Positions 13,789-36,992 of a stretch of 64,000 nucleotides of DNA are shown here, in pieces (the stretch's first letter is position 1; the number at the start of each line of letters is the position of its first letter). The DNA is taken from IMG/VR virus record IMGVR_UViG_3300049215_000771, positions 1-64,000 of that record. One strand, given 5' to 3'. The notes below the pieces were generated by a model. The model was not told the DNA's origin. It made no database searches and saw only the letters and a list, made by a program, of their open reading frames with translations. The position numbers were made by a program, and so were the translations under genes.

Positions 13789-14031
13789 ATGGACGACAAA
13801 ATCTTCAAGGTGCCGGACGCAGGCGAAAACGTCGTTATCCGAATCTTGCCGCCGAAGAAGGTTATGCCGTTTTATGCGACAAGGGTTCACAGGCTGCATC
13901 AGAAGAACAAAGCCTGCCCGATCTGTGAGTACGAGAAGCAATTGTCGGAAAAGCAGAAAGCCAATGGCGCAGGTGGAAGGAAGAAGAAGCGCTGGAGGAA
14001 TATCGACGAGCCTTGGGAGGCTTCGTCGTAG
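13789..14031 (+). CDS. gp32-like SSB N-terminal fragment with RSIDD-type tag
   Basis: GENVVIRILPP...H...CPICEY then KKKRWRNIDEPWEASS*. Confidence 0.6.
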   Translation: MDDKIFKVPDAGENVVIRILPPKKVMPFYATRVHRLHQKNKACPICEYEKQLSEKQKANGAGGRKKKRWRNIDEPWEASS

Positions 14032-14059
14032 GTCGCCCTTAGCACGAGGAGGAGTCCGA

Positions 14060-14599
14060 ATGAAAACGATTTGGTCTGCTTTTTCCATCGGGATCATCTT
14101 GATCTTGCTGGGTTGTCATCCGACACCCGCCCCCAATGCGACGGCTCAACCGGCCAAGGCAGCACCGGCTGCGGCTGGCGGGCAGAACGCCGTCGAGGAG
14201 CAAGGCAAGTATGTGAATTCGGCGAGCGCCAGGCTCGTCAAACTCATCAACCTGGGCAACGAGGCCGGCTTCAAGTTGCCGCATCACTCGTTCAGCGGCG
14301 GTGGGGGTTGGCTGTCTTCTGGTGAGGACAAGTGGGTGTCGCTGTACACCGTGCGGTTGGAGTCCACCAAGGACTACCGATTCCTGGCGGCGGGCGACAT
14401 GGATGCGAAGGTGTTGAACCTTCAGGTCTGCAACGTGGACGGCAAGGTGTTGGCGAACGATACTGACAATGACAGTCAGGCCGTGCTGAACTTCACGCCG
14501 AAGCAGACGGATCGGTACACCATCAAGATCAGGCTCAGGTCGTCGAAAGGCGGCGAGCAAGCGTTCTGTTTCGCCATGATGATGGAACGCAAACGGTAA
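14060..14599 (+). CDS. putative lipoprotein with PPC-like beta domain
   Basis: Signal peptide ending LLGC; AGDMDAKVLNLQV...F.P....Y.I.I. Confidence 0.65.
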   Translation: MKTIWSAFSIGIILILLGCHPTPAPNATAQPAKAAPAAAGGQNAVEEQGKYVNSASARLVKLINLGNEAGFKLPHHSFSGGGGWLSSGEDKWVSLYTVRLESTKDYRFLAAGDMDAKVLNLQVCNVDGKVLANDTDNDSQAVLNFTPKQTDRYTIKIRLRSSKGGEQAFCFAMMMERKR

Positions 14600-14630
14600 A
14601 CTCACTGCTCGCAGTGAGTTTCACTGCGAG

Positions 14631-14702
14631 GGGCGTTTAGCTCAGTGGTAGAGCGCCTGGATCACACCCAGGAGGCCGCTGGTTCAATCCCAGCAACGCC
14701 CA
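14631..14702 (+). tRNA. tRNA-Val(CAC)
   Basis: Cloverleaf; CCTGG-ATCACAC-CCAGG. Confidence 0.9.
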
Positions 14703-14779
14703 CTTCCGATGATACGCTGTAGCGTGTCGTCAGGCTGAAACAACAGCGTATTGGCCGCAATGCGACCGATGGGAAGTTA

Positions 14780-14904
14780 GGCCGGGTAGTGTAACGGTAG
14801 CACGGGTAAAAGCAGTCTCAGCGCCAATTTGTCCTACGGGAATGCTTAGTTGGGATTACATCCATTACCAGGACCAAGTACAGGTTCAATTCCTGTCCCG
14901 GCCT
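14780..14904 (+). ncRNA. tRNA-scaffolded Y-RNA-like chimera, copy 4
   Basis: GGCCGGG/CCCGGCC acceptor, D and T arms; core identical to copy 1. Confidence 0.75.
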
Positions 14905-14920
14905 CTGTAGGAACACAACG

Positions 14921-15130
14921 ATGAAGGTTTGCGATGCCTGTGGTTGTTCTGATGCCAAGCATCAGGAAGTCGGCGGTGTCGGGGTGGAAGTCAAAGGCTA
15001 CCATCACCAGCATCATACTCACCGTGGAAAGCCCTGGTATTGGACTCTGGATTTGTGCCCGAAGTGTGCAGGTCAATTGAAGGATGAACTTGATGCTGTA
15101 ATTCGGACTTTCAAGGAAGGTGGAAGCTAG
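14921..15130 (+). CDS. Zn-finger hypothetical protein
   Basis: CDAC...DLCPKC. Confidence 0.6.
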   Translation: MKVCDACGCSDAKHQEVGGVGVEVKGYHHQHHTHRGKPWYWTLDLCPKCAGQLKDELDAVIRTFKEGGS

Positions 15131-15285
15131 GTGGCGGAACCAGACGCACCACTGACAAGAACGCAGGTGGCGGTACGCTAACCCATCATGTATGTCCGGG
15201 GAGGGTGTCGGCTGTAGCCTCGTACCCCTGCATGGTGGTGTCCCCGACAGGACTGTACTTTGTAGGTTGGACTCCTACCCTAGCA
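15126..15285 (+). ncRNA. tRNA-like RNA with ~110-nt central insertion
   Basis: GCTAGG/CCTAGC acceptor, Leu-type TGGCGGAA..AGACGC D arm, GTAGG-TTGGACT-CCTAC T arm; insert hairpin CCATCATGTA/TGCATGGTGG. Confidence 0.55.
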
Positions 15286-15299
15286 CTGGAATCATTTAT

Positions 15300-15369
15300 T
15301 GCGGGGGCGCTGGGCCGCAGGCAGGTCTTTGAAGCCAGCCGTGGAGAGTTCGATCCTCTCACCCGCTGC
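15300..15369 (+). tRNA. degenerate tRNA-Gln(TTG)
   Basis: CTTTGAA loop, GAGAG-TTCGATC-CTCTC T arm, imperfect stems. Confidence 0.5.
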
Positions 15370-15380
15370 TTGGAGAAGTG

Positions 15381-15680
15381 ATGGCAACCATCAAGATTGA
15401 CGAACTCAGGCAATGGGTTCAACAATACAAGGATGACGAAATCATCAGCGTCGGCCAGGCTGGTGCTATCAAGGCGATGGATTACTTCCTTGAAGTTTTC
15501 GGTCGTCATGGTGATCTGGTTGATGGCGGCGGCGTGCTGGTGACGAAATCGGCTCAAAACGAAACTCGCCGTTGTATCGAAATCCTCAACGCCTTCATGG
15601 GCAAGATGTCGTTGTTGGCGCTGATGAGTCTCAGCGACGAGGAACGACAGAAGGCATTGTTTGGGGATGACGATGACTAG
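15381..15680 (+). CDS. hypothetical protein
   Basis: GGAG RBS. Confidence 0.6.
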   Translation: MATIKIDELRQWVQQYKDDEIISVGQAGAIKAMDYFLEVFGRHGDLVDGGGVLVTKSAQNETRRCIEILNAFMGKMSLLALMSLSDEERQKALFGDDDD

Positions 15681-15912
15681 GCATGATGAGTTCACCCATA
15701 CCATTTCAAGTGACAATGCCCCGGAACGACTGAAGGGCAAGATCGTCAAAGCTGTCCTTACCGAAGGACAGCTTTCTTTCGAGATAGACATGCCCGACGA
15801 CCCCACTCCCAATGAGTTGGGATATTTCAAATGGTTCACTGGAGAATTGGTGGACAAGTTGAAATCCCAAACCGGCATCGGCATGACCTGTAGGGGATTG
15901 GAGAAGAAATAG
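15673..15912 (+). CDS. hypothetical protein
   Basis: Overlapping start in gene chain. Confidence 0.55.
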   Translation: MTRHDEFTHTISSDNAPERLKGKIVKAVLTEGQLSFEIDMPDDPTPNELGYFKWFTGELVDKLKSQTGIGMTCRGLEKK

Positions 15913-15918
15913 ACAGAT

Positions 15919-15991
15919 TCCCAGGTAGCTCAGTTGGTAGAGCGGCTGACTGTTAATCAGCATGTCGGGGGTTCGAGTCCCTCCCTGGGAG
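15919..15991 (+). tRNA. tRNA-Asn(GTT)
   Basis: Canonical cloverleaf; GCTGA-CTGTTAA-TCAGC. Confidence 0.95.
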
Positions 15992-15993
15992 CT

Positions 15994-16665
15994 ATGATGA
16001 AAGTTAATCAACACCTTGCCTGGACGGAAAAATACGCCAAGATTTCCAATAAGGTGTATCCAACGGAGTTGCTGGTCAGAATTCTAGCTGGCGGCAATTA
16101 CCCCAGGATGAAGATCAAAACCAGTCTGACTGGTAAGGCGCTCGATGTTGGGTGCGGTGATGGGCGTAATTTCGGCCTCCTGAAAGATGTAGGCTTCAAA
16201 GTCTACGGCACAGAGATCACCGAGGGCATCGTGTCCGTTCTGCGGGCTGCATATCCAGATGTTGAATTGGCTGTCGCCTTCAATCACTCCTTGCCCTACC
16301 CTGATGGATTTTTCGATTGCATTGTTGCGGTTCATTCCTGCTACTATCTCGAAGATGGCGTAAAATTCGCTCAGGTTGTCAACGAGTTCAAAAGAGTGCT
16401 GAGGCCGGGCGGGTTGTTCGTAGGAACCATACCCGACACTAGGAACAGTGTGCAAAAAAATGCCGTAATACACCCCGACATGGAGTGTGTGATTACAAGC
16501 GATCCATTTGGTTTGCGAAATGGATGTAGGATGCAGTTGGCAAATTCCGAAGAACGGGTGCATAACTTGTTGGAGCCGGAATTCAACGATGTGTCGGTGG
16601 GGTCGTTTCACGACAACTATTTTGGCTCGGTGGTATCCGGGTATATGTTCGTCGCATACTCATGA
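15994..16665 (+). CDS. class I SAM-dependent methyltransferase
   Basis: ALDVGCGDGRN...LPYPDGFFD...RVLRPGG. Confidence 0.88.
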   Translation: MMKVNQHLAWTEKYAKISNKVYPTELLVRILAGGNYPRMKIKTSLTGKALDVGCGDGRNFGLLKDVGFKVYGTEITEGIVSVLRAAYPDVELAVAFNHSLPYPDGFFDCIVAVHSCYYLEDGVKFAQVVNEFKRVLRPGGLFVGTIPDTRNSVQKNAVIHPDMECVITSDPFGLRNGCRMQLANSEERVHNLLEPEFNDVSVGSFHDNYFGSVVSGYMFVAYS

Positions 16666-16982
16666 AATACAAAGTTCACAAATGCTGTCAGTCTGCTAGT
16701 GGCGGCAGCCATGTTACGATCTATGACGCCGACCTGGAGTTCACGGTTAATCGGGGCGATATTCAAGTCATTCTCCCTCCAGGGCAAGAAGCTGCCGTGG
16801 ACGTGCAAGAAGCTGCCGAGGCGATCAAGAAAGGCGCAGAAACAGCATTGACGCCTCGTGGGGTTGGTGCGATAATCAAACTTAGTCGGGTCGTGATACA
16901 TATGGTGGATTTCAAGCCCAGGAAGTTCGAGCAGTACACGACCGAAGAACTGGATCGCATCTGTGAGGGCGGTCTGCTTTGA
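16662..16982 (+). CDS. hypothetical protein (possible EF-G domain IV/S5-fold resemblance)
   Basis: AIKKGAETAL...V.IHMVD...F spacing recalls EF-G domain IV; weak. Confidence 0.45.
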   Translation: MKYKVHKCCQSASGGSHVTIYDADLEFTVNRGDIQVILPPGQEAAVDVQEAAEAIKKGAETALTPRGVGAIIKLSRVVIHMVDFKPRKFEQYTTEELDRICEGGLL

Positions 16983-16984
16983 TT

Positions 16985-17064
16985 GCCGCAGCACGACAAG
17001 GGTGGCCGACACCTATCATATGCTCTGGTTGTTGGTTGTAGGGTTCAAATCCCTGCCTGCGGCG
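16985..17064 (+). ncRNA. tRNA-like RNA with extended anticodon arm
   Basis: GCCGCAG/CTGCGGC acceptor, GTAGGG-TTCAAAT-CCCTGC T arm; no 7-nt anticodon loop. Confidence 0.5.
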
Positions 17065-17067
17065 TTT

Positions 17068-17139
17068 GCGAGGTTGGCATAGCGGCTGTGCGGTAGCCTT
17101 CCAAGCTACTTTAGACGGGTTCGACTCCCGTACCTCGCT
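17068..17139 (+). tRNA. tRNA-Gly(TCC)
   Basis: GTAGC-CTTCCAA-GCTAC. Confidence 0.9.
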
Positions 17140-17161
17140 CTACCTTGTAGGAGGAAATGGA

Positions 17162-17587
17162 ATGATCTTTCAGCTTGAGTGGACGACTTATGACAGCGCC
17201 ATCATCCATCACTTTGAGGCTCCTGAAGGGGCCACGCTGGAACAGTTCCAGGCGTTATGCGACAAGTTGATGGAAGAATCGCTTCAGGACGCTGTTGAAG
17301 GCAAGCCTGGGCGTTCGCCGATGCACGAAAACCCGCCGTACTGGTTGGGTTATATGTATGGTGTTGAGGAAGTCGCCGCCCGGCTTGCCGATCACGGATA
17401 CAAGGAAGTCAAGTTCGCCACGGTCAACTACACGCACGGCAGCATTATCGACGGCAAGAAGCCGGAAGAAGGTTGTGAAGATTTCGGTTACGGCAAGACC
17501 CTCACGGGTGATACACGGGAGAAGGTCGCCGCCTATAACCAGAAGATGAGCGAGGACAATAAGGAACGTCGCCAACGCAAAAGCTGA
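17162..17587 (+). CDS. hypothetical protein
   Basis: AGGAGG RBS. Confidence 0.65.
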   Translation: MIFQLEWTTYDSAIIHHFEAPEGATLEQFQALCDKLMEESLQDAVEGKPGRSPMHENPPYWLGYMYGVEEVAARLADHGYKEVKFATVNYTHGSIIDGKKPEEGCEDFGYGKTLTGDTREKVAAYNQKMSEDNKERRQRKS

Positions 17588-17645
17588 TTTGACTAGCTTC
17601 CGATTGTGAACTAGGGTTGTTACAACCCTCACAATAGGAGCAATC

Positions 17646-17855
17646 ATGAAGATCATCTGTGCGTGGTGTCAAGCTGACATGGGCGAGAAGGAGCCGCTGG
17701 AAGATACACAGATTTCCCATAGCATCTGTCCTTCGTGCATGGAAGTTGAAATCCAGTGCCTCCGTAGTTCAATGGCAGAACGCCAACTTGGTAAGTTGGA
17801 GGCTGTGGGTTCAATTCCCACCGGAGGCTCTTCAGATGTCGCAACAAAGGTCTAA
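17646..17855 (+). CDS. small Zn-finger protein
   Basis: ICAWC...SHSICPSC; AGGAG RBS. Confidence 0.6.
   Translation: MKIICAWCQADMGEKEPLEDTQISHSICPSCMEVEIQCLRSSMAERQLGKLEAVGSIPTGGSSDVATKV
17758..17829 (+). tRNA. tRNA-Thr(GGT)
   Basis: CCAAC-TTGGTAA-GTTGG. Confidence 0.92.
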
Positions 17856-18060
17856 GGATGCTAATTCGTCTATCCTCGAACGCTTCAAGGAGATGGAAGC
17901 GTCCTATGGTTACTCCTGGGACGAAGCTAACAACCAGCCTCGTCGCCTTGGTCAAACACATCGCTACATCGACGAGCCGTTCGAGGACTCCAGCACTGCC
18001 CAGCCGAAAGAGCCGAAGGAACATGGCGACCTTTGCTTCTGTAAAGACTGCCTGTCGTAA
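17836..18060 (+). CDS. hypothetical protein with RSIDD-like motif
   Basis: HRYIDEPFEDSS, C-terminal CFCKDC. Confidence 0.55.
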   Translation: MSQQRSKDANSSILERFKEMEASYGYSWDEANNQPRRLGQTHRYIDEPFEDSSTAQPKEPKEHGDLCFCKDCLS

Positions 18061-18098
18061 GGACAGCACGCATAATGGTCGCTCGGTAGTGGGTTGAT

Positions 18099-18464
18099 AT
18101 GGACAACATCGACGACTTGCTGAAGGATTTGTACAGCAAAGAACCCCGCAAGCGGCGCAAGAAGAAATATCGCAGCATTGACGACCCCTGGGAAGATTCA
18201 AGCGAATTCAAGCCCTTCAAAAAGCCGACAATCAAATCCTTCAAGCCTGTTGAGCGGTATTACTACAATGCCGTCATACGGGATCAAAGCGGGTCGATGG
18301 GTGAGGCGAAGTTGTTTTCTGTTGGGCCGACCTTGCACAAGAAGATCATGGAGGCTATGATTGGAACGGGGCAAATGCAAAGTATGTCAACGGTCGATCC
18401 TGTATCTGGAAACGAAGGCGCACATCCAGTTCGGCGGGATGGCCCCTCCAGTTCAGAAAGATGA
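18099..18464 (+). CDS. RSIDD-tagged protein with gp32-like SSB central fragment
   Basis: KKKYRSIDDPWEDSS then KPVERYYYNAVIR...KLFSVGPTLHKKIMEAM. Confidence 0.6.
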   Translation: MDNIDDLLKDLYSKEPRKRRKKKYRSIDDPWEDSSEFKPFKKPTIKSFKPVERYYYNAVIRDQSGSMGEAKLFSVGPTLHKKIMEAMIGTGQMQSMSTVDPVSGNEGAHPVRRDGPSSSER

Positions 18465-18629
18465 TTTGTGCCCTGTGTGTTGGGTCGATATTCACCCGGA
18501 TGAAGAAGTTCCCAAACTACCTGGTTGGCAATATATGCTGCGAGAGGTAGCAACTGTTGGGAAGAAAGGCAAACGAAGGAAGTACCTTGCCGAATCTCAC
18601 AAAGCAGAAGAAGTGGTCCGGGAAGAACT

Positions 18630-18708
18630 GTCGGCGGAAGCGAAACTGGTAGGGCACCAGGACGGTCTGCAAAACCGCTGCTAAGAGGTTCAACTCCTCC
18701 TGCCGACT
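18630..18708 (+). tRNA. tRNA-Cys(GCA), atypical D arm
   Basis: CGGT-CTGCAAA-ACCG; U73; GAGG-TTCAACT-CCTC. Confidence 0.7.
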
Positions 18709-18710
18709 CT

Positions 18711-19058
18711 ATGATAATCACACCAATGCAACTGTGTCCTGGCATGGCCGAGGCTACCAGGCCCGAAAAGATCGAACTTCTTCGGGAGATCGACGCTGAG
18801 ATTGGTCGTCTCCAGAATAAGCGTATGAACAACACGCTGATGCAGCTTGTGGGTGTTGTTGTGATATTCGCCGCACAACTCATCAACATCTACTTCTGGC
18901 CGACGCCTACGGGCAACGAAGATGTTGATTTTTGCATCAAGTGGTCTTGGCCTGTCTGGATGTTGGTTTGGGGTGCGATCATTATCTGGCGTGGAAGTCG
19001 GATCAGCAAACAGATCAGGGACAAGATCGACGAATTCTTCATGGAACTGCAAACGTGA
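18711..19058 (+). CDS. membrane hypothetical protein
   Basis: Two hydrophobic segments. Confidence 0.6.
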   Translation: MIITPMQLCPGMAEATRPEKIELLREIDAEIGRLQNKRMNNTLMQLVGVVVIFAAQLINIYFWPTPTGNEDVDFCIKWSWPVWMLVWGAIIIWRGSRISKQIRDKIDEFFMELQT

Positions 19059-19483
19059 CGGATGATTGCAAAGTTTCCGAGAAAGCTGAATGCTATGGGC
19101 ATCTCGATCAGGCGCTTGGCCAGTATGAAAACCTCAGATTCCTTAAAGATATGAGGGTGCAGAATCGCCAATATATGGGCGACGGGATCGACGAGAAGTT
19201 TGTCTGGACGGTCAATTATGATCGTGGCATGAAAGTTTTGCGGAAATTGATTGCTTGCTACGTTCCCGAAGACCTGGTTGATTGTACTTTCAAGTACGTT
19301 GCTGCCATGTACGATATGGAGTGGCGGCGGTACGAGCAGGACAAGCAGGCTGGCAAGGTGAAGGCTGGTTCTGAAGATTACAGGAATTACTCCTGGCGTG
19401 GCAATGGGCCGAGGCCATACTTCGAGGAGTTGATTTCCACTTTCATGAAGAAAAAGAAGCATCGCAGCATTGATGACGAGTAG
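19055..19483 (+). CDS. RSIDD-tagged hypothetical protein
   Basis: Ends KKKKHRSIDDE*. Confidence 0.6.
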   Translation: MTDDCKVSEKAECYGHLDQALGQYENLRFLKDMRVQNRQYMGDGIDEKFVWTVNYDRGMKVLRKLIACYVPEDLVDCTFKYVAAMYDMEWRRYEQDKQAGKVKAGSEDYRNYSWRGNGPRPYFEELISTFMKKKKHRSIDDE

Positions 19484-19495
19484 CATATCTAAAAT

Positions 19496-20425
19496 ATGCT
19501 CAAGATAGAACCAACCTACAATCACGTCCGGCATCTCATTCGGACCCGACCCGGCATTATCATCACGAATGCTTGCAACCTTGCCTGTGGCGGGTGCTAC
19601 GCCCAATGCGGTAAGTTCTCCAAGGACAAGCTGTGGTTTATTTCCTTGGATCAGTTCAGGGAGAACCTGGAATATATCGCCAAATATATGTACCAGGGTA
19701 AAGTCGAGTTGTTGAACGGGGAGGTAGTCGATATAAACCCGGAACGGCACGGTATCGACATGATCGGGGGCGAGCCTTCCATACACCCGGAATGGGAGAA
19801 GATTTGGGAGCTAATGACTGACGAATACAAGTCGTTGAAGTTTTTGGTTTCCACCAACGGGCGGGTGACATTCCCGAAAGCCGACAACGTGGGTTTGCAT
19901 CTTGACTACAAAACGAAAGATACACCTTCCCAGCATGAGTTTGTCTCAACACTTGTGGCCCCGATTGATGTTGTTGGTATTCAGGACCGTGGTTACTACT
20001 GGAAAACTGCACAAACAGATTGCGGTATCTGGAAGTCGTTGGGTTGTGTAAATCCAATCTACAAGAACCAGATTTCGCTTTGTTCGGTTGCTTCAAGTTG
20101 GAACGATCTTCTTGATCTGGACCTGGGATGGCCGTTGACGCCGGGCGGGAACCCGTTCTCGAAGTTGACCGACAAGGACGTGCGAGAGAAAGCCAGCAAG
20201 GTTTGTTATCGTTGTGGTTGGTCGAAGAAGATGAACCTGCCAGAAGACCAGCGTTCGGAAGGTTACGACCTGGTGAGCGCAACGAACCTGGAAACCTTGA
20301 CTCAAAATGGAAGAAACAAACCCTACAAACTCATCTACAGGGAGGGGGATGAGATCAAGGTTGGCGAATTGAAGGGTTCCAGGGAACTGGTGCAATTGGA
20401 AGTCAGGAAGAAGATGGCCGGCTAG
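19496..20425 (+). CDS. radical SAM protein
   Basis: CNLACGGC (CxxxCxxC), GGEP, STNG. Confidence 0.85.
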   Translation: MLKIEPTYNHVRHLIRTRPGIIITNACNLACGGCYAQCGKFSKDKLWFISLDQFRENLEYIAKYMYQGKVELLNGEVVDINPERHGIDMIGGEPSIHPEWEKIWELMTDEYKSLKFLVSTNGRVTFPKADNVGLHLDYKTKDTPSQHEFVSTLVAPIDVVGIQDRGYYWKTAQTDCGIWKSLGCVNPIYKNQISLCSVASSWNDLLDLDLGWPLTPGGNPFSKLTDKDVREKASKVCYRCGWSKKMNLPEDQRSEGYDLVSATNLETLTQNGRNKPYKLIYREGDEIKVGELKGSRELVQLEVRKKMAG

Positions 20426-20428
20426 TAT

Positions 20429-20499
20429 TGCCTCGTGGTGTAATGGTAGCACTGCTGACTCTGGATCAGCCAGTCTTCGTTCGAGTCGAAGCGAGGCAG
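20429..20499 (+). tRNA. tRNA-Gln(CTG)
   Basis: GCTGA-CTCTGGA-TCAGC. Confidence 0.9.
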
Positions 20500-20500
20500 C

Positions 20501-20529
20501 TTTACAATGGCTTGAAAGCGTGGTAGAAT
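20501..20529 (+). promoter_or_regulatory. sigma70-type promoter
   Basis: TTTACA-N17-TAGAAT with TG extension. Confidence 0.65.
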
Positions 20530-20549
20530 CCCACCCAGGAGGGTTCATC

Positions 20550-21056: not shown

Positions 21057-21082
21057 GAACATGAAGAACTTGTGCTGACAAC

Positions 21083-21580: not shown

Positions 21581-21631
21581 ACCTTGGCGGCGGCTGCGTG
21601 TCTTACTTGTGTTCGCCGAAAGGAGCCAAAG

Positions 21632-22343: not shown

Positions 22344-22346
22344 GAC

Positions 22347-22421: not shown

Positions 22422-22424
22422 CTT

Positions 22425-27878: not shown

Positions 27879-27908
27879 ATGATTTTGAAGGAGCGGTGTA
27901 GATAAGGC

Positions 27909-28763: not shown

Positions 28764-28797
28764 TGAAAGAAACCTTCCAGATCGGCTAGATAGCTTC

Positions 28798-29505: not shown

Positions 29506-29700
29506 GTTATTTTACCCTCAAGTATCTGGAACTCAAACTTGCGTTTGGCGAATTCGGCAAGCAGAAGAAGTATCAACGGCTTTGCCTTGAGCGAAATGCG
29601 ACAACGACTGCTGCGAGATTGGAAATTGCCAAGGAAGTTCTTGATGGTCCCGGCGTCAACAGCCTGGAGTCCTGGGCGCACGACACTTACTTGAAAGAAC

Positions 29701-30159: not shown

Positions 30160-31063
30160 CCTGGAGGATAGGTATGCGCCGCCTAGCTACGAGTTCGTGT
30201 CGTCTCGTTTCGAGAAGTTCGGGTTCCCGCTCGTAATTGACGAAACGATCATTCCCGACGACGACACGACGTTGTTTGTTTGCAGTGGGATGCAAAGGCT
30301 CAGGAACAAGTTTCTGACGCCGGATGGAAGCAAGCACGGCTCTCTACAGTCGTGCATTAGGACCAACGATCTGGAGTTGGTCGGCGATGGATCGCACCTT
30401 ACATATTTTCAAATGCTTGGTAATTTCTCATTTGGTGGGGATTACGAGCAGTCAGTTGAGCTATGGCACAATCTGCTCACTGATCTTCAGATCAAAATCG
30501 AACCAGTTCACTGTCATCCTGACAATCCTGGGCACCACCAGTTGTGGCGCAAGCGGGGATATGATACAGTTGACGATGTGTCGTGCGTCTGGAGTGACGG
30601 CCAGATTGGGGGCTACTGCTGCGAGGTTTATAGCCGGGGGTTGGAGATTGGCAATCTTGTCAATACCCTTGGGCATTCGACGGACGTGGGGTTTGGCTGG
30701 GAAAGGTTGTTCCTCATTGTCGAGGGCAAGGAGAGGGTCGATCAAACCTCCTTGTTCCTCAATCATCACCCAATTGTGGCGGATCACGCCCGGACGCTGG
30801 AAATCCTGTGGAAAAACAACGTAGTTCCTGGTACAAAGCATAGGAACTATGTTTGCCGCAGGCTCCTGCGGAGGATGCTGCGATACCTGAACGGCACAGA
30901 GAAATTCGTCTTTGACGAATGGCTCTCCCAGGAAAGAACGCAGCTAGAGCGTCGTGTCCGAGAGGCGAGAAAAATATGGCACAGGTACAAGCACCAGCCA
31001 TCCGAGTGGTGGTGGACGACCTGTGGTATATTGCCTGAAGAAGTTCCACTACTAGGGAGATGA
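30146..31063 (+). CDS. alaS: alanyl-tRNA synthetase, catalytic core only
   Basis: DTTLFVCSGMQ...QSCIRTNDLELVG...FQMLGNFSFG...DVGFGWERL...ADHAR...YVCRRLLRR; no editing or C-Ala domain. Confidence 0.85.
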   Translation: MRTTNLEDRYAPPSYEFVSSRFEKFGFPLVIDETIIPDDDTTLFVCSGMQRLRNKFLTPDGSKHGSLQSCIRTNDLELVGDGSHLTYFQMLGNFSFGGDYEQSVELWHNLLTDLQIKIEPVHCHPDNPGHHQLWRKRGYDTVDDVSCVWSDGQIGGYCCEVYSRGLEIGNLVNTLGHSTDVGFGWERLFLIVEGKERVDQTSLFLNHHPIVADHARTLEILWKNNVVPGTKHRNYVCRRLLRRMLRYLNGTEKFVFDEWLSQERTQLERRVREARKIWHRYKHQPSEWWWTTCGILPEEVPLLGR

Positions 31064-31350
31064 TGATGGATGAACGCACCCCAAAAAAGGAGATGACCAC
31101 TACGGAGGCGGCGAAGGCGAAAGCCCTCGATCAGTTCATTCGGCGTAAGCGTTACGCCGCACAGATTGAGAAGATCGACAACGCCGGCCTTCACGCCGGT
31201 CAGCCGATGTACTTCTACTGTGATACTTGTGGCATTCCCACGGAGGTCTTGCCGGAAGACTACCTGTTCTGCCCCTACAAGATGTGTTCTCAGTGCAAGG
31301 GGATGGAAGAAGAAGGCTGGCTGGAGGAAGCCATCAAGTTGAAGGAATAG
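31060..31350 (+). CDS. Zn-ribbon hypothetical protein
   Basis: IDN..L.AG.PMYFYC..C...C..C. Confidence 0.65.
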   Translation: MMMDERTPKKEMTTTEAAKAKALDQFIRRKRYAAQIEKIDNAGLHAGQPMYFYCDTCGIPTEVLPEDYLFCPYKMCSQCKGMEEEGWLEEAIKLKE

Positions 31351-31373
31351 GGAGCAGTTACCCCGGATGCTGT

Positions 31374-31402
31374 TTTACAAACAAGGGCATCCGGGGTACT
31401 AT
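31374..31402 (+). promoter_or_regulatory. sigma70-type promoter
   Basis: TTTACA-N17-TACTAT. Confidence 0.6.
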
Positions 31403-31433
31403 CCCCTAGCTGGAGGATTCAAGTGAGGTTGAG

Positions 31434-31862
31434 ATGAACAAGATTGAAAGAAAAGACGCCCATGCTTTTTTTGACAGCCTGATTGCTGGGGAGTCGCCTG
31501 AAGAAAAAATCGCCATCCTTCGAGACATCTTGGTGGATGAGTTTTGTTTCAATGGGATGCCAGAAGAAGTTTCTGAATTGGAAGCTGCTGTCTATGCCGT
31601 CATGAGCAGTCCGCAGGGGGCTTCGCAGAAGATTCAACAGATCAAGTTGGTTCGGGAAAAAACCGGCCTGGGCTTGAAGGAAGCGAAGGAATTCGTCGAA
31701 TCTTTGACGCCAGGGCATCCTTACTACGGCCAGAAGCAGTACCGTCAAATTGATCGGTTGTTGCCGACCCCGCAGGATTACACGGATACGGCGCTGGTGA
31801 ACCGGCTCAACAAGATCGCCAGGGCGTACAACAGGCCGGGAATCTGCTTTACAAACGCCTGA
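31434..31862 (+). CDS. ribosomal L7/L12 C-terminal-domain protein
   Basis: KIQQIKLVREKTGLGLKEAKEFVE. Confidence 0.75.
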   Translation: MNKIERKDAHAFFDSLIAGESPEEKIAILRDILVDEFCFNGMPEEVSELEAAVYAVMSSPQGASQKIQQIKLVREKTGLGLKEAKEFVESLTPGHPYYGQKQYRQIDRLLPTPQDYTDTALVNRLNKIARAYNRPGICFTNA

Positions 31863-31876
31863 TGTCGTAGTAGAAT
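31848..31876 (+). promoter_or_regulatory. sigma70-type promoter (tRNA-Gly/Ro60 unit)
   Basis: TTTACA-N17-TAGAAT. Confidence 0.65.
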
Positions 31877-31903
31877 GCTTGTTGCCCTTTCTTCCGAAGG
31901 CAA

Positions 31904-31974
31904 GCGGGTATGATGTAGCGGCAGCCTGTCACGTTCCCAACGTGAATGTGGGGGTTCGACTCCCCCTACCCGCT
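31904..31974 (+). tRNA. tRNA-Gly(CCC)
   Basis: TCACG-TTCCCAA-CGTGA. Confidence 0.88.
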
Positions 31975-32077
31975 CTCAAGTAAGTTGTTGGGATGTTCCC
32001 ACGTTCGCCCAAACCGTCGTTGTAGGCGGCAAGGTCGTGGTGGTTGCAGGACTCCCAAATGAAAGGTAGGTGATACG

Positions 32078-33943
32078 ATGGCAAACAAGAATCTGTTCAG
32101 CAAGCCGGGCGCACAGGGCCAGCATGTCGGTAGCGTTCCGAACGCCGACACCAAGAACGAGGCTGGCGGCAAGGCTTATTCCATGTCGAACGAGGCTGCC
32201 CTGGCGCAGTTCGTGGCGACTTCGTGCCTCAACGGTACGTTCCACACGTCGGCCAAGGATCAGCTTGATACCGTCAAGAAGCTGCTCGCCGGCTGCACCC
32301 CGGAGTTCATCGGCAAGGTTGCCATCTACGGTCGCCAGAGCGCCTTCATGAAGGATTTGCCGGCATTGTGCATCAGCCATCTGGCTGCCGACAACGGTGG
32401 CGGCAAGAACGCTGGTGATCCGTCCCGTCGTTCCGCCCCGTCGTGGACGGGTGGTCCGACCACGCCTGAGCAGGAGGCGAAGCAGGAAGTTCTCAACAAG
32501 GTTTTCCCGCACGTCATTGATTCTGGCACGATGGTCCGTAACTTCGTGCAGATGATCCGTTCCGGCGTGCTGGGCCGCAAGTCGCTGGGCTACAGCCTCC
32601 GTCACCTGGTTCGCCAGTGGTTCGAGAACCGCAGCCCGGCTACGATCTTCCACAACAGCATCGGCAACAACCCGACGCTGGGCGAAGTGATCCGTATCGC
32701 CCGTCCGAAGCCGAACACCCCGGAGAAGGCGGCTTTGTTCGCCTACCTGACGGGGGCGAAGGTCGTTGATGACGCCGAGGGGAAGGTACTCCGTACCTAC
32801 TTCAAGGACGACAGCGACGGCCAGGTGAAGGTTGCCTACGAACACCCGTTCGCCAACCTGCCGCAGATCGTGCAGCAGTTCGAGGCGTGGAAGGCGGACC
32901 AGACGCTTCCTCAGCCGAAGCTGAACTTCCGTTTCCTGGACGGCATCAAGAAGCTGTCTACTGCCGAGTGGACGGAAATCGCTCGGAACGCCAACTGGTT
33001 GACCACGTTGAAGTCCATGAACACCTACAAGGAGCATGGCGTATTCGATCAGCCTGGTATGGTGGAACTGATCTCGGCTCGGCTGGCTGACGCCAACGAA
33101 GTCGCCAAGGTCCGGGTTTTCCCGTACCAGATTCTCATCGCCTACCTTGCCTCCGAGGGCAAGGCTCCGCAGAAGGTCCGTGATGCTTTGCACGACGCAC
33201 TGGAAGCTGCTACTCGCAACGTGCCGGTGTTGACGGGCAAGGTCTACATCTGTGTGGACGTGTCGGGTTCGATGACGACGGGTCGGGTTACGGGCGACCG
33301 TGGCTCGGCGACGACGGCGGCTCGTTGTATCGACGTGGCGGCGCTGTACGCAGCCTCGCTGCTTCGTGTCAACAAGAGCGCCGAAGTCATTCCGTTCGAG
33401 GTAGGTGTCGTCCTGCCGAGCAAGCTGACGTTGGAACCACGGGACACCGTGATGACCAACGCCCGCAAGCTGGCGTCCATCGGCGGCGGTGGTACGAACT
33501 GTTCGGCTCCGCTGAACATGCTCAACCAGCGCAACGCCAAGGGCGATGTCGTTGTCTTCGTCAGCGACTACGAGTCGTGGGCCGATGGTCCGAACGCTCA
33601 CAACGGCAAGGCTACGGCCATGCTGGAGCAGTGGGCCATCTTCAAGAAGCGCAACCCGGACGCCAAGCTGGTTTGCATCGACTTGACGCCTCGTGCCAAC
33701 CACCAGGTTGTCGAGCGCCCGGACATCCTCCAGGTTGGCGGTTTCTCCGACAACGTGTTCAACGTCGTGGCTCGGTTCGCCGAGAGCGGCTGGGACAAGA
33801 ACTTCTGGCTCCAGGAGATCAACAAGATCGACCTGGACGCCTTGGGCGACCTGTGTGGCTCGAAGGCGAAGAAGCAAGATGCAGTGCAGGTTGAAGTCAC
33901 CGAGGCTGTCGGCGGTGATGAAGAGTCCGAAGAACAGCAGTAA
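32078..33943 (+). CDS. Ro60/Rsr TROVE + vWA domain RNA-binding protein
   Basis: NEAGG.AY...LAQ...FPYQ.L.AY...VDVSGSM...GGGGTNCSAPL...VSD.ESW...GGFSD.VF. Confidence 0.93.
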   Translation: MANKNLFSKPGAQGQHVGSVPNADTKNEAGGKAYSMSNEAALAQFVATSCLNGTFHTSAKDQLDTVKKLLAGCTPEFIGKVAIYGRQSAFMKDLPALCISHLAADNGGGKNAGDPSRRSAPSWTGGPTTPEQEAKQEVLNKVFPHVIDSGTMVRNFVQMIRSGVLGRKSLGYSLRHLVRQWFENRSPATIFHNSIGNNPTLGEVIRIARPKPNTPEKAALFAYLTGAKVVDDAEGKVLRTYFKDDSDGQVKVAYEHPFANLPQIVQQFEAWKADQTLPQPKLNFRFLDGIKKLSTAEWTEIARNANWLTTLKSMNTYKEHGVFDQPGMVELISARLADANEVAKVRVFPYQILIAYLASEGKAPQKVRDALHDALEAATRNVPVLTGKVYICVDVSGSMTTGRVTGDRGSATTAARCIDVAALYAASLLRVNKSAEVIPFEVGVVLPSKLTLEPRDTVMTNARKLASIGGGGTNCSAPLNMLNQRNAKGDVVVFVSDYESWADGPNAHNGKATAMLEQWAIFKKRNPDAKLVCIDLTPRANHQVVERPDILQVGGFSDNVFNVVARFAESGWDKNFWLQEINKIDLDALGDLCGSKAKKQDAVQVEVTEAVGGDEESEEQQ

Positions 33944-33950
33944 CCCTTCG

Positions 33951-33995
33951 GGGGTTGGGCGTCTGTTAGCAAGGGCGTCCCAACCCCCTTTTTTG
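33951..33995 (+). terminator. rho-independent terminator
   Basis: GGGGTTGGGCGTC..GGCGTCCCAACCCC followed by T-run. Confidence 0.75.
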
Positions 33996-34404
33996 CGAGG
34001 GCGGCATGGATTTCACGCTTACCATTGGCGACAAATTGTCCACTTTCACGCCCAACACTGACGCTGCACGGGCCTACTTGCAGAAGCACGGCCTCCCGAA
34101 TCCCTGGGAAGTTTCGACACACGAATTCAGCTTGCCCATGCACATGACCCACATCGAGGTCGAGGCCAAGCTGACCCTGGAGACGAAAGATGAGCGGGGA
34201 AAATCCTCAACTTGACATCGTTGCCGAGTCCCTTGCGCAACATCCGAACGTCAAGCAGATTCTTGGCTGCATGAACAAAGAAACAGATGGCCTGCACGTC
34301 GTCATTGACGGCGAGCAGTACATCGTCACCATCCGGCCTCGCCATGATGGTGAAAGTTTCACCTTGTACGAGATGCAGGAACTTGGTCCGAAGGGACATG
34401 CCCA

Positions 34405-34773
34405 ATGAGGCATATGATGCACGCTAAGTTGGTGTACGAACACGCCGGTCGTCCCACTTGGACGATCTGTGATGTTATCTTGTACGAGCCGAACGACGAG
34501 ACGGCGAAGGTTATTGCCGTGTTCACGCAGCTTGATGCCCACCGGGGCGTGAGCATCACCAACTCCGTCGAGAGCGCCTGTGCCGCTTTCTGTGAAGATC
34601 GCAACGTATACCCTGACCAGTGTGTTTTCATCGAGCGGTATGAACATTCGCCCGAAGACCTGGACATGATTTTTCTCGATGAGTATGGCCAGAATCCTCG
34701 CTGGAAACGTCTTGCAAAGGAGCAATCGGCGGGTATACTAGCTGTTTTGCCCAAACCTAGCCTCGTGGTGTAA
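34405..34773 (+). CDS. hypothetical protein
   Basis: G.SITN..E.......F.E.Y......P.W motif. Confidence 0.6.
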   Translation: MRHMMHAKLVYEHAGRPTWTICDVILYEPNDETAKVIAVFTQLDAHRGVSITNSVESACAAFCEDRNVYPDQCVFIERYEHSPEDLDMIFLDEYGQNPRWKRLAKEQSAGILAVLPKPSLVV

Positions 34774-34888
34774 CGGTAGCACAACGGTCCTCTGAAAAGG
34801 GATAGTCTCGACACTATTTGTCCTTCGGGAATGCCGTTGGGATTACATTCATAATCCGTGTGTCCTGGTTCGAGTCCAGGCGAGGCGA
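34759..34888 (+). ncRNA. tRNA-scaffolded Y-RNA-like chimera, copy 5
   Basis: GCCTCG/CGAGGC acceptor, D and T arms; AGTCTCGAC-ACTATTTG-TCC-TTCG-GGA-ATGCC-GTTGGGA-TTACAT; residual TTCATAA-TCCGT. Confidence 0.75.
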
Positions 34889-34890
34889 CT

Positions 34891-35244
34891 ATGGAAGATA
34901 TAAGGAGTCATCCTGCTTTGCAGGCGGCATTTGCAAGGGGTAGGGCAATGAAAGAACAACAGCCCGACGAGCCAATTGGAAATCTCCAACCCCTGGGTCT
35001 TGAGAACCCCCACCTGCCGATCTGGTCCTCGATGTTGGACAATCGCTTCCTGTGCGAAGTCCAACGCATCGACGCCGATTATGGCACTTTCGTCATTTTC
35101 GACGTTCACGATGGCAACAAGCCTGTTTTCAACCGGAAGGTTCCGCTCATGTACGGAGCGCCTTTCGGCCCGGACGTTGACGATGTTGCCCGGTGGGAAG
35201 AAATGGGCATCCAGTTTGTGGATACAGGAAAGGTTGAACCATGA
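34891..35244 (+). CDS. hypothetical protein
   Basis: W...LD.RF..EV.R...V.L.YGA.FGPDVDDV..W. Confidence 0.65.
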   Translation: MEDIRSHPALQAAFARGRAMKEQQPDEPIGNLQPLGLENPHLPIWSSMLDNRFLCEVQRIDADYGTFVIFDVHDGNKPVFNRKVPLMYGAPFGPDVDDVARWEEMGIQFVDTGKVEP

Positions 35245-35831
35245 CCAGACCAGCCGACGACCGTTACTCTGTTGAGGAAACCAAACTCACCCCTGAAGAA
35301 GTTGCGCAACTCGAAGCCGAGGCCAAGCAGCCCCACCCTGGCCCTTCTGAAGAAGAGCGCATGGCCTGTTTCAAGGACGAGAACCCCTATCTCCACATCT
35401 ATGCCCAAGAACAGTGGCATGGCGAAGCATTCATGGTCGCCAACATGCAGGCGTTGCTTTTGCTTCGCAAAGCCATCGACGATGCTCTCCTGAATGGACA
35501 TGGCTACGTTCCGGCTTTCGTTGGTGATGGCGAAGGTTACAACACGCTTATCGCCAAGATGGACGATCCCAGGGAATTCGACAACCTGGCTGTTCCCTAC
35601 AACGACGAGATCGCCCAGGAAACAAGGGAACTGGCTGTCTGGCCGTGGAAACTTCCCAGGATCAGGCAAGCCGGCGACGACGCAATGGCCTGGATTGAGA
35701 AGAAATACACCAAGGAAGAAGCTGAAGAAATCATCGCCAGCCTCAAGGAAGATCGTGAAAGGGAACAAACAGCACGACAGGGAGGCGACAGCATTCTCGC
35801 CCAGCAGAAGAAAGATCGAGGCGAAGCATGA
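35241..35831 (+). CDS. hypothetical protein
   Basis: LHIY.Q..WH.EAF...F..DGEGY. Confidence 0.65.
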   Translation: MTRPADDRYSVEETKLTPEEVAQLEAEAKQPHPGPSEEERMACFKDENPYLHIYAQEQWHGEAFMVANMQALLLLRKAIDDALLNGHGYVPAFVGDGEGYNTLIAKMDDPREFDNLAVPYNDEIAQETRELAVWPWKLPRIRQAGDDAMAWIEKKYTKEEAEEIIASLKEDREREQTARQGGDSILAQQKKDRGEA

Positions 35832-36190
35832 TCGAGCCTGAACGAATCTTGTACTACTTCGAGCATGTCGCTTTGCTTTTTTGCGAAGCGGAAGTTATGG
35901 GCGAAGCGCAGGAAGATGGTTCCCGTCCGATTCACTACGAGTGGTCGGATGAGTTCAAGAAGAGTATGGAGAAATTCCTCTCTTGCTTCTACATATTCTG
36001 TCATGTCGGGACTGCGAGTATGCACAAGTGCCAGCACCCCGATTGGGAGGAAATGTTCCTGAAGTGGGAGAAGGAAATGATTGACAGTGGGCATATGAAG
36101 CCCTATGATGTCAGGAAGCAGGAAGGCCCGCTGTCCAGTGATGCACTGGACAAAGCGATGGGCAAATTCCTTATCCAAAATCAGAAATGA
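35828..36190 (+). CDS. hypothetical protein
   Basis: ATGA coupling. Confidence 0.6.
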   Translation: MIEPERILYYFEHVALLFCEAEVMGEAQEDGSRPIHYEWSDEFKKSMEKFLSCFYIFCHVGTASMHKCQHPDWEEMFLKWEKEMIDSGHMKPYDVRKQEGPLSSDALDKAMGKFLIQNQK

Positions 36191-36194
36191 AGAT

Positions 36195-36268
36195 GGCGGC
36201 GTAGCTGAGTTGGCTCAAGCGCCTTGCTCATAACGAGGAGTACGTCAGTTCGATCCTGACCGCCGCTA
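36195..36268 (+). tRNA. tRNA-Met(CAT)
   Basis: CCTTG-CTCATAA-CGAGG. Confidence 0.88.
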
Positions 36269-36270
36269 CT

Positions 36271-36300
36271 AAACGCCACTCGATTTCGAGTGGCGTTTTT
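36271..36300 (+). terminator. rho-independent terminator
   Basis: AAACGCCACTCGA-TT-TCGAGTGGCGTTTTT. Confidence 0.8.
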
Positions 36301-36314
36301 GCTAGGATAGGGCC

Positions 36315-36992
36315 ATGAAAAACCGACCCTGGCTCGCATACCCAAAGAAGGAAGGCGAAAACATAAAGTTTCGCATTCTTCCCCCATTCCGGCCACTGAG
36401 CCTACAGTGGCATACGTTCGCTCGTGCTATTGATACAGCCTATCACACCTTCCAATGTCCCAGGCGGCTCGTTGCTGCTCGTTGGGAGGGGTATTGTCCG
36501 GCCTGTGAATACGTCAAAGAACTCTATGGTGCCGGCCTCGCAACTGGAGATATTGAAGAGGCCAAGCGACTGAGGGCGTGGGAGCGACATTACTACAACG
36601 TCTTCGACCGAGCGGATAATTTTCCCAAGGGGTTCGCAGCCTTCAAAGCTACACACCAACATCTTCTGACTTATATTCTTGGCGATCCTGACCAGGGCAT
36701 TGCAGCCTGTGGCGATATTACCGACATGACTACAGGTCGAGATGTCATTGTTCACTGTGATAAGATCATGGCGGGGAAGTACCCCAACTACCAGGTGATC
36801 TTACTTCAACCCGGCCCGTTCAATGAAGAAGCAGAAATTTGCAACTTTTTCAGTGAGTGGCCGGATGATTTTGAAGATGTGCCTCAAGACCACACCACTC
36901 AAATTGAATACGTTATCGAGCATTTCTATCGTCATTCGCCCAGGAAGCGACGTATGTGGCGTTCGATAGATGAACCCTGGTCTTCGCAATAA
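36315..36992 (+). CDS. divergent gp32-like ssDNA-binding protein with RSIDD tag
   Basis: KEGENIKFRILPP...CPACE...RHYYNV...GDITD...GRD...YPNY; ends RRMWRSIDEPWSSQ*. Confidence 0.7.
   Translation: MKNRPWLAYPKKEGENIKFRILPPFRPLSLQWHTFARAIDTAYHTFQCPRRLVAARWEGYCPACEYVKELYGAGLATGDIEEAKRLRAWERHYYNVFDRADNFPKGFAAFKATHQHLLTYILGDPDQGIAACGDITDMTTGRDVIVHCDKIMAGKYPNYQVILLQPGPFNEEAEICNFFSEWPDDFEDVPQDHTTQIEYVIEHFYRHSPRKRRMWRSIDEPWSSQ

Follow-up and report, generated by a model that had tools for sequence, protein, structure and literature searches.

A probable accessory gp32 paralog and two gp32 pieces share a peptide tag in a phage from a moss metagenome

[quoted passage not shown] The C-terminal tip peptides of SSBs, such as DDDIPF in bacteria and the acidic tail of gp32 (gp32-Dda complex, 8gme), are expected to recruit partners rather than to bind DNA. 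Short terminal peptides are also shared for targeting, including the cargo-loading peptides of encapsulins, the capsid targeting sequence of T4 internal proteins, and the C-terminal tail of the HK97 protease, and C-terminal motifs of the PIP-box or T4 type (e.g., S-L-D-F-L-F) bind the sliding clamp. The phage described here comes from a moss metagenome and is represented by a 673-kb contig that was trimmed to a virus record of 533 kb (IMGVR_UViG_3300049215_000771); the window analyzed comprises the first 64,000 nt of that record. The preliminary description had reported three gp32-like open reading frames (ORFs) in the window, each with a tag. All three were found on the plus strand at the stated coordinates, with a tag of the form [K/R]n-aromatic-R-S-I-D-D/E-(P-W), together with the following features.

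13710..13784, plus strand: tRNA-Met, its 3' end 4 nt upstream of the ATG of the next ORF, which has no Shine-Dalgarno sequence
13789..14031, plus strand: N fragment, an 80-aa ORF with the gp32 N-terminal strand motif (..VVIRILPP..), the zinc-finger His, and the CPxC knuckle, ending in a linker and then the tag RKKKRWRNIDEPWEASS
17836..18060, plus strand: 74-aa ORF starting 5 nt past tRNA-Thr, in which a tag variant HRYIDEPFEDSS lies internally and a short, Cys-rich terminus (..CFCKDC..) comes after it, assigned to the putatively rearranged gp32/tag locus
18099..18464, plus strand: middle fragment, a 121-aa ORF with an N-proximal tag RKRRKKKYRSIDDPWEDSS (about nt 18144-18200, residues about 17-32) ahead of KPVERYYYN...HKKIMEAMIG, the central block of gp32 (about nt 18234-18416)
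36271..36303, plus strand: terminator-like element, located after tRNA-Met (36195-36269) and before the next ORF, in which a strong hairpin leads into a U run
36315..36992, plus strand: 225-aa tagged gp32 paralog with a complete OB-fold and zinc-finger core and the C-terminal tag RKRRMWRSIDEPWSSQ (about nt 36942-36989)
37029..39797, plus strand: isoleucyl-tRNA synthetase, separated by 37 nt from the tagged gp32 upstream
58150..58437, plus strand: tagged capsid fragment, a 95-aa ORF in which major capsid protein residues 55-102 are joined through a linker to a C-terminal tag

The 225-aa ORF resembled T4 and RB69 gp32 in its OB fold, its His-Cys3 zinc finger, and the most conserved core residues of the family, but scored under the Pfam threshold and was 27% identical to the canonical gp32 of its own phage. 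It matched phrog_1192 (SSB; E 1.8e-4); there was no Pfam match at E<=1, and the curated threshold of PF08804 was not reached. An exhaustive HMMER search returned 112 relatives with E-values down to 1e-43, and canonical-length gp32 relatives with acidic tails matched the ORF in an exhaustive phmmer search with E-values down to 5e-14. The ORF is a divergent member of the gp32 family. An AlphaFold2 model built on an 87-sequence alignment (pLDDT 88, pTM 0.80) was compared with known structures as had been proposed, and the top Foldseek matches were gp32 structures (2a1k, 1gpc, and 8gme; E 1e-8 to 7e-6, TM about 0.6), led by the core of RB69 gp32 (2a1k; E 1e-8, TM 0.62) and that of T4 gp32 (1gpc; E 1.6e-8). 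The gp32 fold, an OB-fold core with an inserted zinc finger, is thus predicted with confidence. The residues R20, P23, C48, C61, C64, R91, Y93, Y94, and N95 were retained, as were G133, G141, D143, and Y159, and the columns of C48, C61, C64, R91, Y93, Y94, and N95 were at least 69% conserved across the 87 sequences. H33 aligned with the canonical zinc-binding His, which completes the His-Cys3 set, and the (R)YYYN aromatic block of the gp32 family was present.

As in the gp32 proteolytic core, both flanking domains were absent from the 225-aa ORF. The first core strand begins after about 14 residues, compared with about 44 in the canonical gp32 of the same phage, so that the N-terminal cooperativity segment (B domain) is missing; the other tagged gp32 members likewise begin at or near the core. 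In place of the acidic C-terminal domain (A domain), which ends in ..DDDF(L/M)xxL.. in canonical relatives, the ORF carried a basic-RSIDEPW tag, a form of the basic-aromatic-RSIDD-PW motif that is common to dozens of unrelated proteins. The preliminary description of a near-complete, divergent core that ends in the tag is therefore borne out. The same C-terminal tag was present on representatives of at least 15 clusters from other phages, 207-250 aa in length, and in a phylogenetic tree the tagged forms, on long branches, fell in one clade with the canonical gp32 of this phage. The ORF belongs to a conserved, fast-evolving subfamily of short, tag-ending gp32 proteins. The three ORFs had been regarded as derivatives of one panel; their common tag and gp32 similarity stand, but the longest of them is no one-off.

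An authentic SSB elsewhere in the genome, which had been named as a point to check, was located on the 673-kb contig at about 544.3-545.3 kb, ~11 kb past the end of the record and outside the window. This canonical gp32 (337 aa, PF08804) has an acidic DDDF-type tail and adjoins genes for a UvsX-like protein (RecA_N) and endonuclease VII (Endonuclease_7). A separate search with the canonical gp32 of a related phage confirmed that PF08804 annotates the canonical family. A related phage of 343 kb contained a canonical gp32 in the same arrangement and a separate tagged gp32, and the two forms were co-resident in both of the two genomes that could be checked. Unlike canonical gp32, the tagged paralog did not lie beside UvsX; it was found among tRNA and translation or RNA genes. 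A class-I aminoacyl-tRNA synthetase likewise follows the tagged gp32 in a related phage (G002), and among small contigs syntenic with this window the neighbors were Pth2, S21, Ro60-vWA, and ClpS in one (L049) and, in another (L050), an ANTAR regulator alongside an RNase H-like gene. The tagged gp32 subfamily therefore occupies a conserved tRNA and translation/RNA gene neighborhood. Because of this context (tRNA, aminoacyl-tRNA synthetase, Pth2, S21, and Ro60-like genes), the ligand of the paralog could be RNA rather than DNA of the replication fork; it is the gene neighborhood that suggests this.

The tag was not restricted to gp32-like proteins. The pattern R[SNT]ID[DE] occurred 40 times in a six-frame translation of the 533-kb record, and 35 of these occurrences lay within 13 residues of a stop codon in a frame open for at least 50 residues, whereas 20 shuffles gave a mean of 1.75 occurrences overall and 0.05 at C-termini. 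About 35-40 small proteins of this phage bear the tag, including membrane proteins, SH3-like proteins, and zinc ribbons; the role of the tag is thus general and need not concern SSB biology. The codons of the tag varied among copies, and its conservation is therefore at the level of the peptide and not of the DNA. Tag variants were uniform inside a phage lineage, differed between lineages, and co-varied within a lineage. The most plausible reading of the tag is that of a short linear motif recognized by a single putative, co-evolving receptor.

The tag shares with SSB tips its small size, disorder, C-terminal position, acidic residues, and an aromatic residue near the terminus; however, it is preceded by a basic cluster, its aromatic is not the last residue, and it is not SSB-specific. 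Its presence on many proteins would therefore represent one label for one putative receptor, the reverse of one SSB tip with many partners. The tag also resembles terminal targeting peptides in being short, conserved, and placed behind a flexible linker on otherwise unrelated proteins of one virus. Four of its carriers have putative N-terminal transmembrane helices, read from their sequences, and would then not be packaged, and the genuine capsid protein, scaffold, and protease of the phage are untagged. Head proteins are the source of several tagged proteins, and two tagged proteins are encoded within the head gene module. The C-terminal place, basic flanks, and aliphatic-aromatic spacing (S-I-D-D-P-W) are also found in clamp-binding motifs, but the canonical Gln and the paired aromatics of the PIP-box are missing. 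Searches with PF09116, PF02916, and PF00712 detected no sliding clamp in this record and two related ones (G000, G001, and G002), a scope that extends neither to the host nor to roughly 120 kb of the parent contig, and no family-B polymerase was found in the same three records.

These observations are, on balance, probably explained by an accessory, core-only gp32 paralog together with tagged pieces of canonical gp32 and a tag that acts as a receptor-read linear motif. In this explanation, the conserved core residues would allow the 225-aa paralog to bind single-stranded nucleic acid without cooperativity, and the tag would couple it to a different partner, one shared with the other small tagged proteins of the phage.

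Both short ORFs are only pieces of the gp32 fold. The middle fragment matched phrog_1192 (E 3.8e-5) and was the only one of the three ORFs with a PF08804 match, which was below threshold (E 0.013; 15.9 bits against a cut-off of 26.8). By BLASTP against the phage's own canonical gp32, 19 of 43 residues of the N fragment (residues 33-75, E 5e-8) and 22 of 50 residues of the middle fragment (residues 130-179, E 2e-12) were identical, so that both pieces, at 44% identity, are closer to canonical gp32 than to the tagged paralog. The gp32 similarity proposed for all three ORFs was thus recovered, by phrog_1192 for the two longer ones, Foldseek for the longest, and BLASTP for the two short ones, and the sequences indicate that the short ORFs descend from a canonical-type gp32 and not from the 225-aa ORF. 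On that ORF they map to about residues 10-70 and 84-125. The suggestion that they cover complementary parts of it holds insofar as the parts are consecutive and non-overlapping; neither of them therefore represents the OB fold's C-terminal half. A complete OB-fold and zinc-finger core was lacking in both, and the segment with the first zinc cysteine was deleted from the N fragment, with the loss of one zinc ligand. The short ORFs are homologous gp32 pieces, not family members by function, each probably too incomplete for an OB fold. They would be unable to fold as an SSB and, if functional, may serve as tagged peptide modules that engage the usual contacts of the respective gp32 block.

The tag of the middle fragment is N-proximal, and the fragment has no C-terminal tag; its 3' end is overlapped in another frame by a zinc-ribbon-like ORF (18361-18684). 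Such a tag at the wrong end and a 3' overlap are typical of a decaying chimera and count against a function of the middle fragment. The sequence [DE]P[WF]E[AD]SS is common to the three local tags, which are near-copies of one another. We infer that the locus at 17.8-18.5 kb is at least partly a product of rearrangement.

The short ORFs may alternatively be debris of a duplicated canonical gp32 that recombined at or near tag DNA, with the 225-aa paralog as the only functional protein; this is rather unlikely, and it would account for the scrambled locus (the internal tag at 17836-18060, the N-proximal tag at 18099-18464, and the ORF overlap), the near-identity of the local tags, and the lost zinc ligand. 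No homologue of either fragment was found in IMG/VR, nor one of the N fragment in a set of 5.8 billion proteins, and the ESM Atlas models were poor (pLDDT 0.41 for the N fragment and 0.50 for the middle fragment). No metatranscriptome contig covered the N fragment. On the other hand, the two ORFs have remained open over 80 and 121 codons although they are only 44% identical to the parent, they retain the most conserved motifs of the family in frame, and their codon usage and GC3 resemble those of genes. Furthermore, a 267-nt metatranscriptome contig (17909-18175) spans the start of the middle fragment, and analogous tagged fragments derived from the capsid protein remain open across phages despite saturated synonymous divergence.

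The short ORFs belong to a wider gene class, in which a tagged mini-protein carries the best-conserved blocks of a larger protein of the phage; among the parents are a head protein, PrkA, the prohead protease, and the major capsid protein. Besides fragments of the last of these, the tag marks a dead paralog of the prohead protease and a PrkA fragment that was found in two lineages. The capsid part of the ORF at 58150..58437 was 87.5% identical to the phage's own capsid protein. The parallel between gp32 and capsid fragments had been drawn in the preliminary description and is stronger than stated there: the tagged capsid fragments tile the Gp23 Pfam profile and recur in other phages (G001, G002, G003, and L049), with dN of 0.33-0.64 between phages and dS of 2.1 for one pair, the other three pairs being too saturated to compute. 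The tag labeling of copies and fragments of core proteins looks like an undescribed strategy.

The three ORFs were originally interpreted as a diversified panel of SSB decoys, parallel to the capsid fragment. Such decoys would mislead or occupy host sensors of phage SSB, the tag would sequester or destroy the bound sensor, and the tagged capsid fragments would act likewise on capsid sensors. Phage SSBs do activate several defense systems, including retron-Eco8, AbpAB, Hna, DARNA, DRT4, and DRT10 (bioRxiv 10.64898/2026.02.22.705581; PMC10732053), and the major capsid protein is also a documented trigger. The tagged pieces are the most conserved gp32 and capsid blocks, which sensors would be expected to read, the capsid-derived mini-genes are kept across phages, and one capsid fragment with an N-terminal tag sits between Macro and PARG genes. 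However, a mimic of a trigger is expected to activate a sensor rather than silence it unless the tag adds something. Some SSB-dependent systems, such as DARNA, sense the ssDNA that SSB presents and not the SSB protein itself (bioRxiv 10.64898/2026.02.22.705581), and fragments unable to bind DNA would not mimic such ssDNA. The tag also occurs on membrane proteins, on PrkA fragments, and on numerous small proteins unrelated to these, and the tagged gp32 paralog lies in a translation/RNA neighborhood. A decoy panel is therefore considered improbable. An equally doubtful, broader proposal is that the tag is an address label with which a megaphage clade sends extra copies and mini-fragments of its best-conserved proteins (capsid protein, gp32, prohead protease, and PrkA) to one receptor, the fragments being baits whose binders are delivered by the tag to sequestration or destruction. 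If true, the baits might bind, for example, subunits of a rival phage or host immune sensors that recognize the core phage proteome.

A split SSB that reassembles from the two short ORFs through their tags is very improbable; it would fit consecutive segments tagged at the C-terminus of one and near the N-terminus of the other, but roughly half the OB fold is still missing from the pair, as is one zinc ligand, the genes are 4 kb apart with unrelated genes in between, and about 35-40 unrelated proteins carry the same tag. Just as little likelihood is given to the 225-aa ORF as the sole replicative SSB with the tag as its partner-binding tail: searches with PF08804, phrog_1192, and PF00436 found no further SSB in the 533-kb record, but the canonical gp32 with its acidic tail lies on the same contig beside the UvsX-like and endonuclease VII genes, and the related phage has the same arrangement plus a separate tagged gp32. 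The ORF is not associated with recombination or replication genes and lies between a tRNA and the isoleucyl-tRNA synthetase. Its candidacy as the only SSB is refuted by the canonical gp32 unless the 673-kb contig is a chimeric assembly. The hairpin between this tRNA and the ORF had a folding energy of -21.1 kcal/mol (z -4.2), and none of 200 shuffled sequences folded as well.

The three gp32-like ORFs of the preliminary description were present in the window, and all of them shared the tag, which in the middle fragment precedes the gp32 block.

13789-14031 (+), 80 aa: N fragment
18099-18464 (+), 121 aa: middle fragment
36315-36992 (+), 225 aa: long ORF, the tagged gp32 paralog

The long ORF represents a conserved gp32 paralog. 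A word-indexed search with this protein returned only itself and it had no Pfam match, but it matched a PHROG SSB family, and an exhaustive HMMER search recovered 112 relatives, most of which were gp32 proteins of canonical length with acidic tails. The canonical-length family was found to carry PF08804 in a separate search. AlphaFold2 gave a pLDDT of 37 from the single sequence, and an alignment of 87 sequences was then used, which raised the pLDDT to 88 (pTM 0.80). The only significant Foldseek matches of this model in the PDB were the gp32 cores of RB69 and T4 and the gp32-Dda complex; thus, the proposed gp32 likeness of the long ORF was borne out by structure prediction. The zinc ligands and the most highly conserved core residues of the gp32 family were retained. 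At least 15 cluster representatives (50% identity) had a length of 207-250 aa and the tag at the end, and the canonical relatives had 300-360 aa and acidic tails of the DDDF type. In a maximum-likelihood tree, every tagged gp32 fell within a clade that included the phage's own canonical gp32; the tagged proteins formed a few clusters on long branches, consistent with a single origin or several.

A related 343-kb phage contained both forms, with the canonical gp32 adjoining UvsX and the tagged form adjoining a class-I aminoacyl-tRNA synthetase. Other neighbors of tagged gp32 genes included Pth2, ribosomal protein S21, a Ro60-vWA protein, and ClpS, and in another setting an RNase H-like gene and an ANTAR regulator were adjacent. 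Small contigs with a tagged gp32 were syntenic with the window, in which the following genes lie in the tRNA array.

32078-33943: Ro60-vWA-like protein
58697-59182: Pth2-like peptidyl-tRNA hydrolase
10844-11590 and 4159-4863: RNase H-like genes

Because the same set surrounds tagged gp32 genes in other phage contigs, these genes suggest a conserved module for translation or RNA quality control.

No other gp32, bacterial-type SSB, or UvsX was detectable within the 532,729-bp IMG/VR record, of which the window spans the first 64 kb. This record had been cut as a supposed provirus from a moss-metagenome contig of 673,178 bp (record position 1 is contig position 710). Two related records were collinear with its end and placed a canonical gp32 and UvsX just past it, and the authentic SSB was located by walking the parent contig.

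Contig 544,304-545,317: canonical gp32, 337 aa, PF08804, ending in ..EEDVLADDDFMKELGDMQ

It is preceded by an endonuclease VII gene and followed by a RecA_N gene. Since this canonical gp32 is present, the long ORF is not the sole functional SSB of the phage, a possibility that the preliminary description had raised, and the expectation of an authentic SSB elsewhere in the genome proved correct. The provirus call cut off about 140 kb of what is evidently phage DNA from the contig (L046 and L048, two stretches of the parent contig; 521,937-552,254). The trimmed-off part holds the canonical gp32, a UvsX-like gene, endonuclease VII, and a second Gp23-family gene, and gene absence judged from the record alone is therefore unsafe.

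gp32 is a textbook SSB, the mode of action of which is set by its two flanking domains. The tagged gp32 proteins are similar to the proteolytic core fragment of gp32 in that both flanking domains are missing. The tagged paralog may therefore bind single strands non-cooperatively and be re-addressed via the tag, and its ligand would perhaps be RNA. A gp32 lineage that is widespread in nature has kept the core alone and exchanged the acidic tail for a motif of dozens of unrelated proteins, which amounts to a novel mode of SSB re-wiring.

The two short ORFs also descend from gp32, as had been proposed. The N fragment aligned to residues 33-75 of the phage's canonical gp32 (44% identity) and to the CPxC knuckle, with the stretch containing the first zinc cysteine deleted, and the middle fragment aligned to residues 130-179 (44% identity), with an identical KPVERYYYN block. 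Both are nearer to the canonical gp32 than to the paralog (44% identity to the canonical gp32, vs. 27% for the paralog). Each is too incomplete for the gp32 fold, and the ESM Atlas models of both were poor. No relatives of either fragment were found in IMG/VR, and a word-indexed protein search with the N fragment returned only itself. Both had gene-like codon usage and were called as genes by public gene callers. The N fragment starts 4 nt past a tRNA and has no Shine-Dalgarno sequence, as is the case for many local ORFs. RNA-library contigs spanned the start of the middle fragment and not the N fragment, at very low depth, and these metatranscriptome contigs were too sparse for ranking expression.

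The locus at 17.8-18.5 kb is rearranged: its three tags are near-copies of one another, ORF 17836-18060 contains an internal tag variant, and the middle fragment overlaps a further ORF at its 3' end. A frameshift fusing 17836-18060 with 18099-18464 is impossible, as the first frame ends at 18060 and the second does not open before 18089, and no gp32 similarity was found when the middle fragment was extended into the +1 frame. Its N-terminus (DDLLKDL) resembles the gp32 acidic tail (DDFMKEL) without significance (E 2.4), a lead only. The middle fragment may be debris.

The tag has the consensus K-K-K-K-[Y/W]-R-S-I-D-D-P-W-E and ends 0-9 residues ahead of the stop codon. It was found at the end of 35 ORFs in the record, compared with 0.05 expected from shuffles, and the residue preceding its Arg was aromatic or His in every case. 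The copies differ in synonymous codons, which indicates selection at the peptide level. The motif was likewise present at the end of small ORFs in three further IMG/VR records and two short, unrelated contigs. Its extended form is uniform within a lineage (on one contig, for example, all tags end in ..EP[A/S]W), which points to co-evolution with a single putative receptor. No shared promoter or upstream motif of the tagged genes was seen by eye. The searchable literature contained no description of the motif, nor of a relevant C-terminal signal in huge phages; the sole text match concerned the RLY/KLY motif of bS21.

Conserved mini-genes built from the best-conserved blocks of three proteins (capsid protein, protease, and PrkA) bear the tag as well. 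A Gp23 family search returned the complete capsid gene together with four tagged mini-ORFs, which cover consecutive segments of the profile, and phmmer added two capsid pieces and a tagged prohead protease paralog.

Tagged derivatives of core proteins in the record
58150-58437, 351369-351617, 453477-453812, 517817-518062, 518216-518509, 524328-524810: six capsid mini-ORFs from successive conserved blocks (tag N-terminal in the last)
238157-238621 (-): prohead protease paralog, catalytic His and Ser motifs altered
246691-247429 (-): 127-aa fragment of the PrkA C-terminal domain

The PrkA fragment was also tagged in a distant small phage contig (L050), and a related phage encodes PrkA at full length. 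Homologous tagged capsid fragments occurred in three other phage records (G001, G002, and G003) and a small phage contig (L049), which upholds the parallel drawn earlier between the gp32-like ORFs and tagged capsid fragments. Between phages, the capsid mini-genes showed dS of 2.1 or not computable (at or near saturation) and dN of 0.33-0.64, indicating that they have long been kept as open genes.

Membrane proteins, SH3-like proteins, and zinc ribbons are further carriers, and the tag is therefore a general label. A putative role as a degron or adaptor-binding motif would fit every carrier class. Capsid targeting is hard to reconcile with the tagged membrane proteins. A clamp-binding motif was rejected, as no gp45-type or beta clamp and no PolB was found in this record and two related ones. 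A decoy function of the tagged gp32 ORFs, as the preliminary description suggested, is hypothetical, and a literature search for capsid-fragment decoys found nothing. The identity of the receptor would account for a sizeable share of the function-unknown small genes in very large phages, and would put directly to the test whether phages turn pieces of their core proteins against host sensing.

Several other features of these genomes were observed. The phage ClpS, a candidate reader of the tag, retains the residues of the canonical N-degron pocket.

Record 493265-493462 (-): ClpS
L049 3717-4064: ClpS, its start overlapping the end of a tagged capsid-fragment gene

The tag core begins with an aromatic residue and Arg, which would form a strong N-degron if exposed by cleavage. 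At 475464-475769 (-) of the record, a copy of the N-terminal propeptide of the capsid protein (about residues 1-50) is joined to a zinc ribbon and not to the tag. Macro-domain and PARG-like genes lie on either side of the N-terminally tagged capsid C-terminal fragment (record 523648-525100; L046 2421-4232), which suggests a capacity for reversing ADP-ribosylation. The source is a very large tailed phage (G+C 53%) with a T4-like head module of portal, Peptidase_S77-type protease, scaffold, and Gp23-family capsid protein. An 860-aa portal-like ORF (record 330888-333467) has an inserted segment resembling an intein or homing-endonuclease insertion. Many genes of G001 (IMGVR_UViG_3300045125_000119) are split into two to four adjacent frames relative to this record, probably by assembly or sequencing indels, and ORF-level conclusions from G001 are therefore unreliable.

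All 38 tRNA genes of the window lie on the + strand; small ORFs are interspersed among them, and an isoleucyl-tRNA synthetase is also encoded. At least 10 ORFs (≥60 aa) begin 1-6 nt past a tRNA 3' end, which leaves no space for a ribosome-binding site.

3457, 8066, 13789, 15994, 17836, 22425, 25010, 26236, 27573, 51860: starts of ORFs directly after a tRNA

tRNA processing would turn these into near-leaderless mRNAs, in an arrangement reminiscent of mitochondrial tRNA punctuation. ARAGORN further predicted two tRNA-like genes with four-base anticodons, one of them 95 nt long, which are candidates for a frameshift suppressor, an intron-bearing tRNA, or a tRNA mimic.

13184-13278 and 55504-55586: tRNA-like genes (anticodons cttg and aagg)
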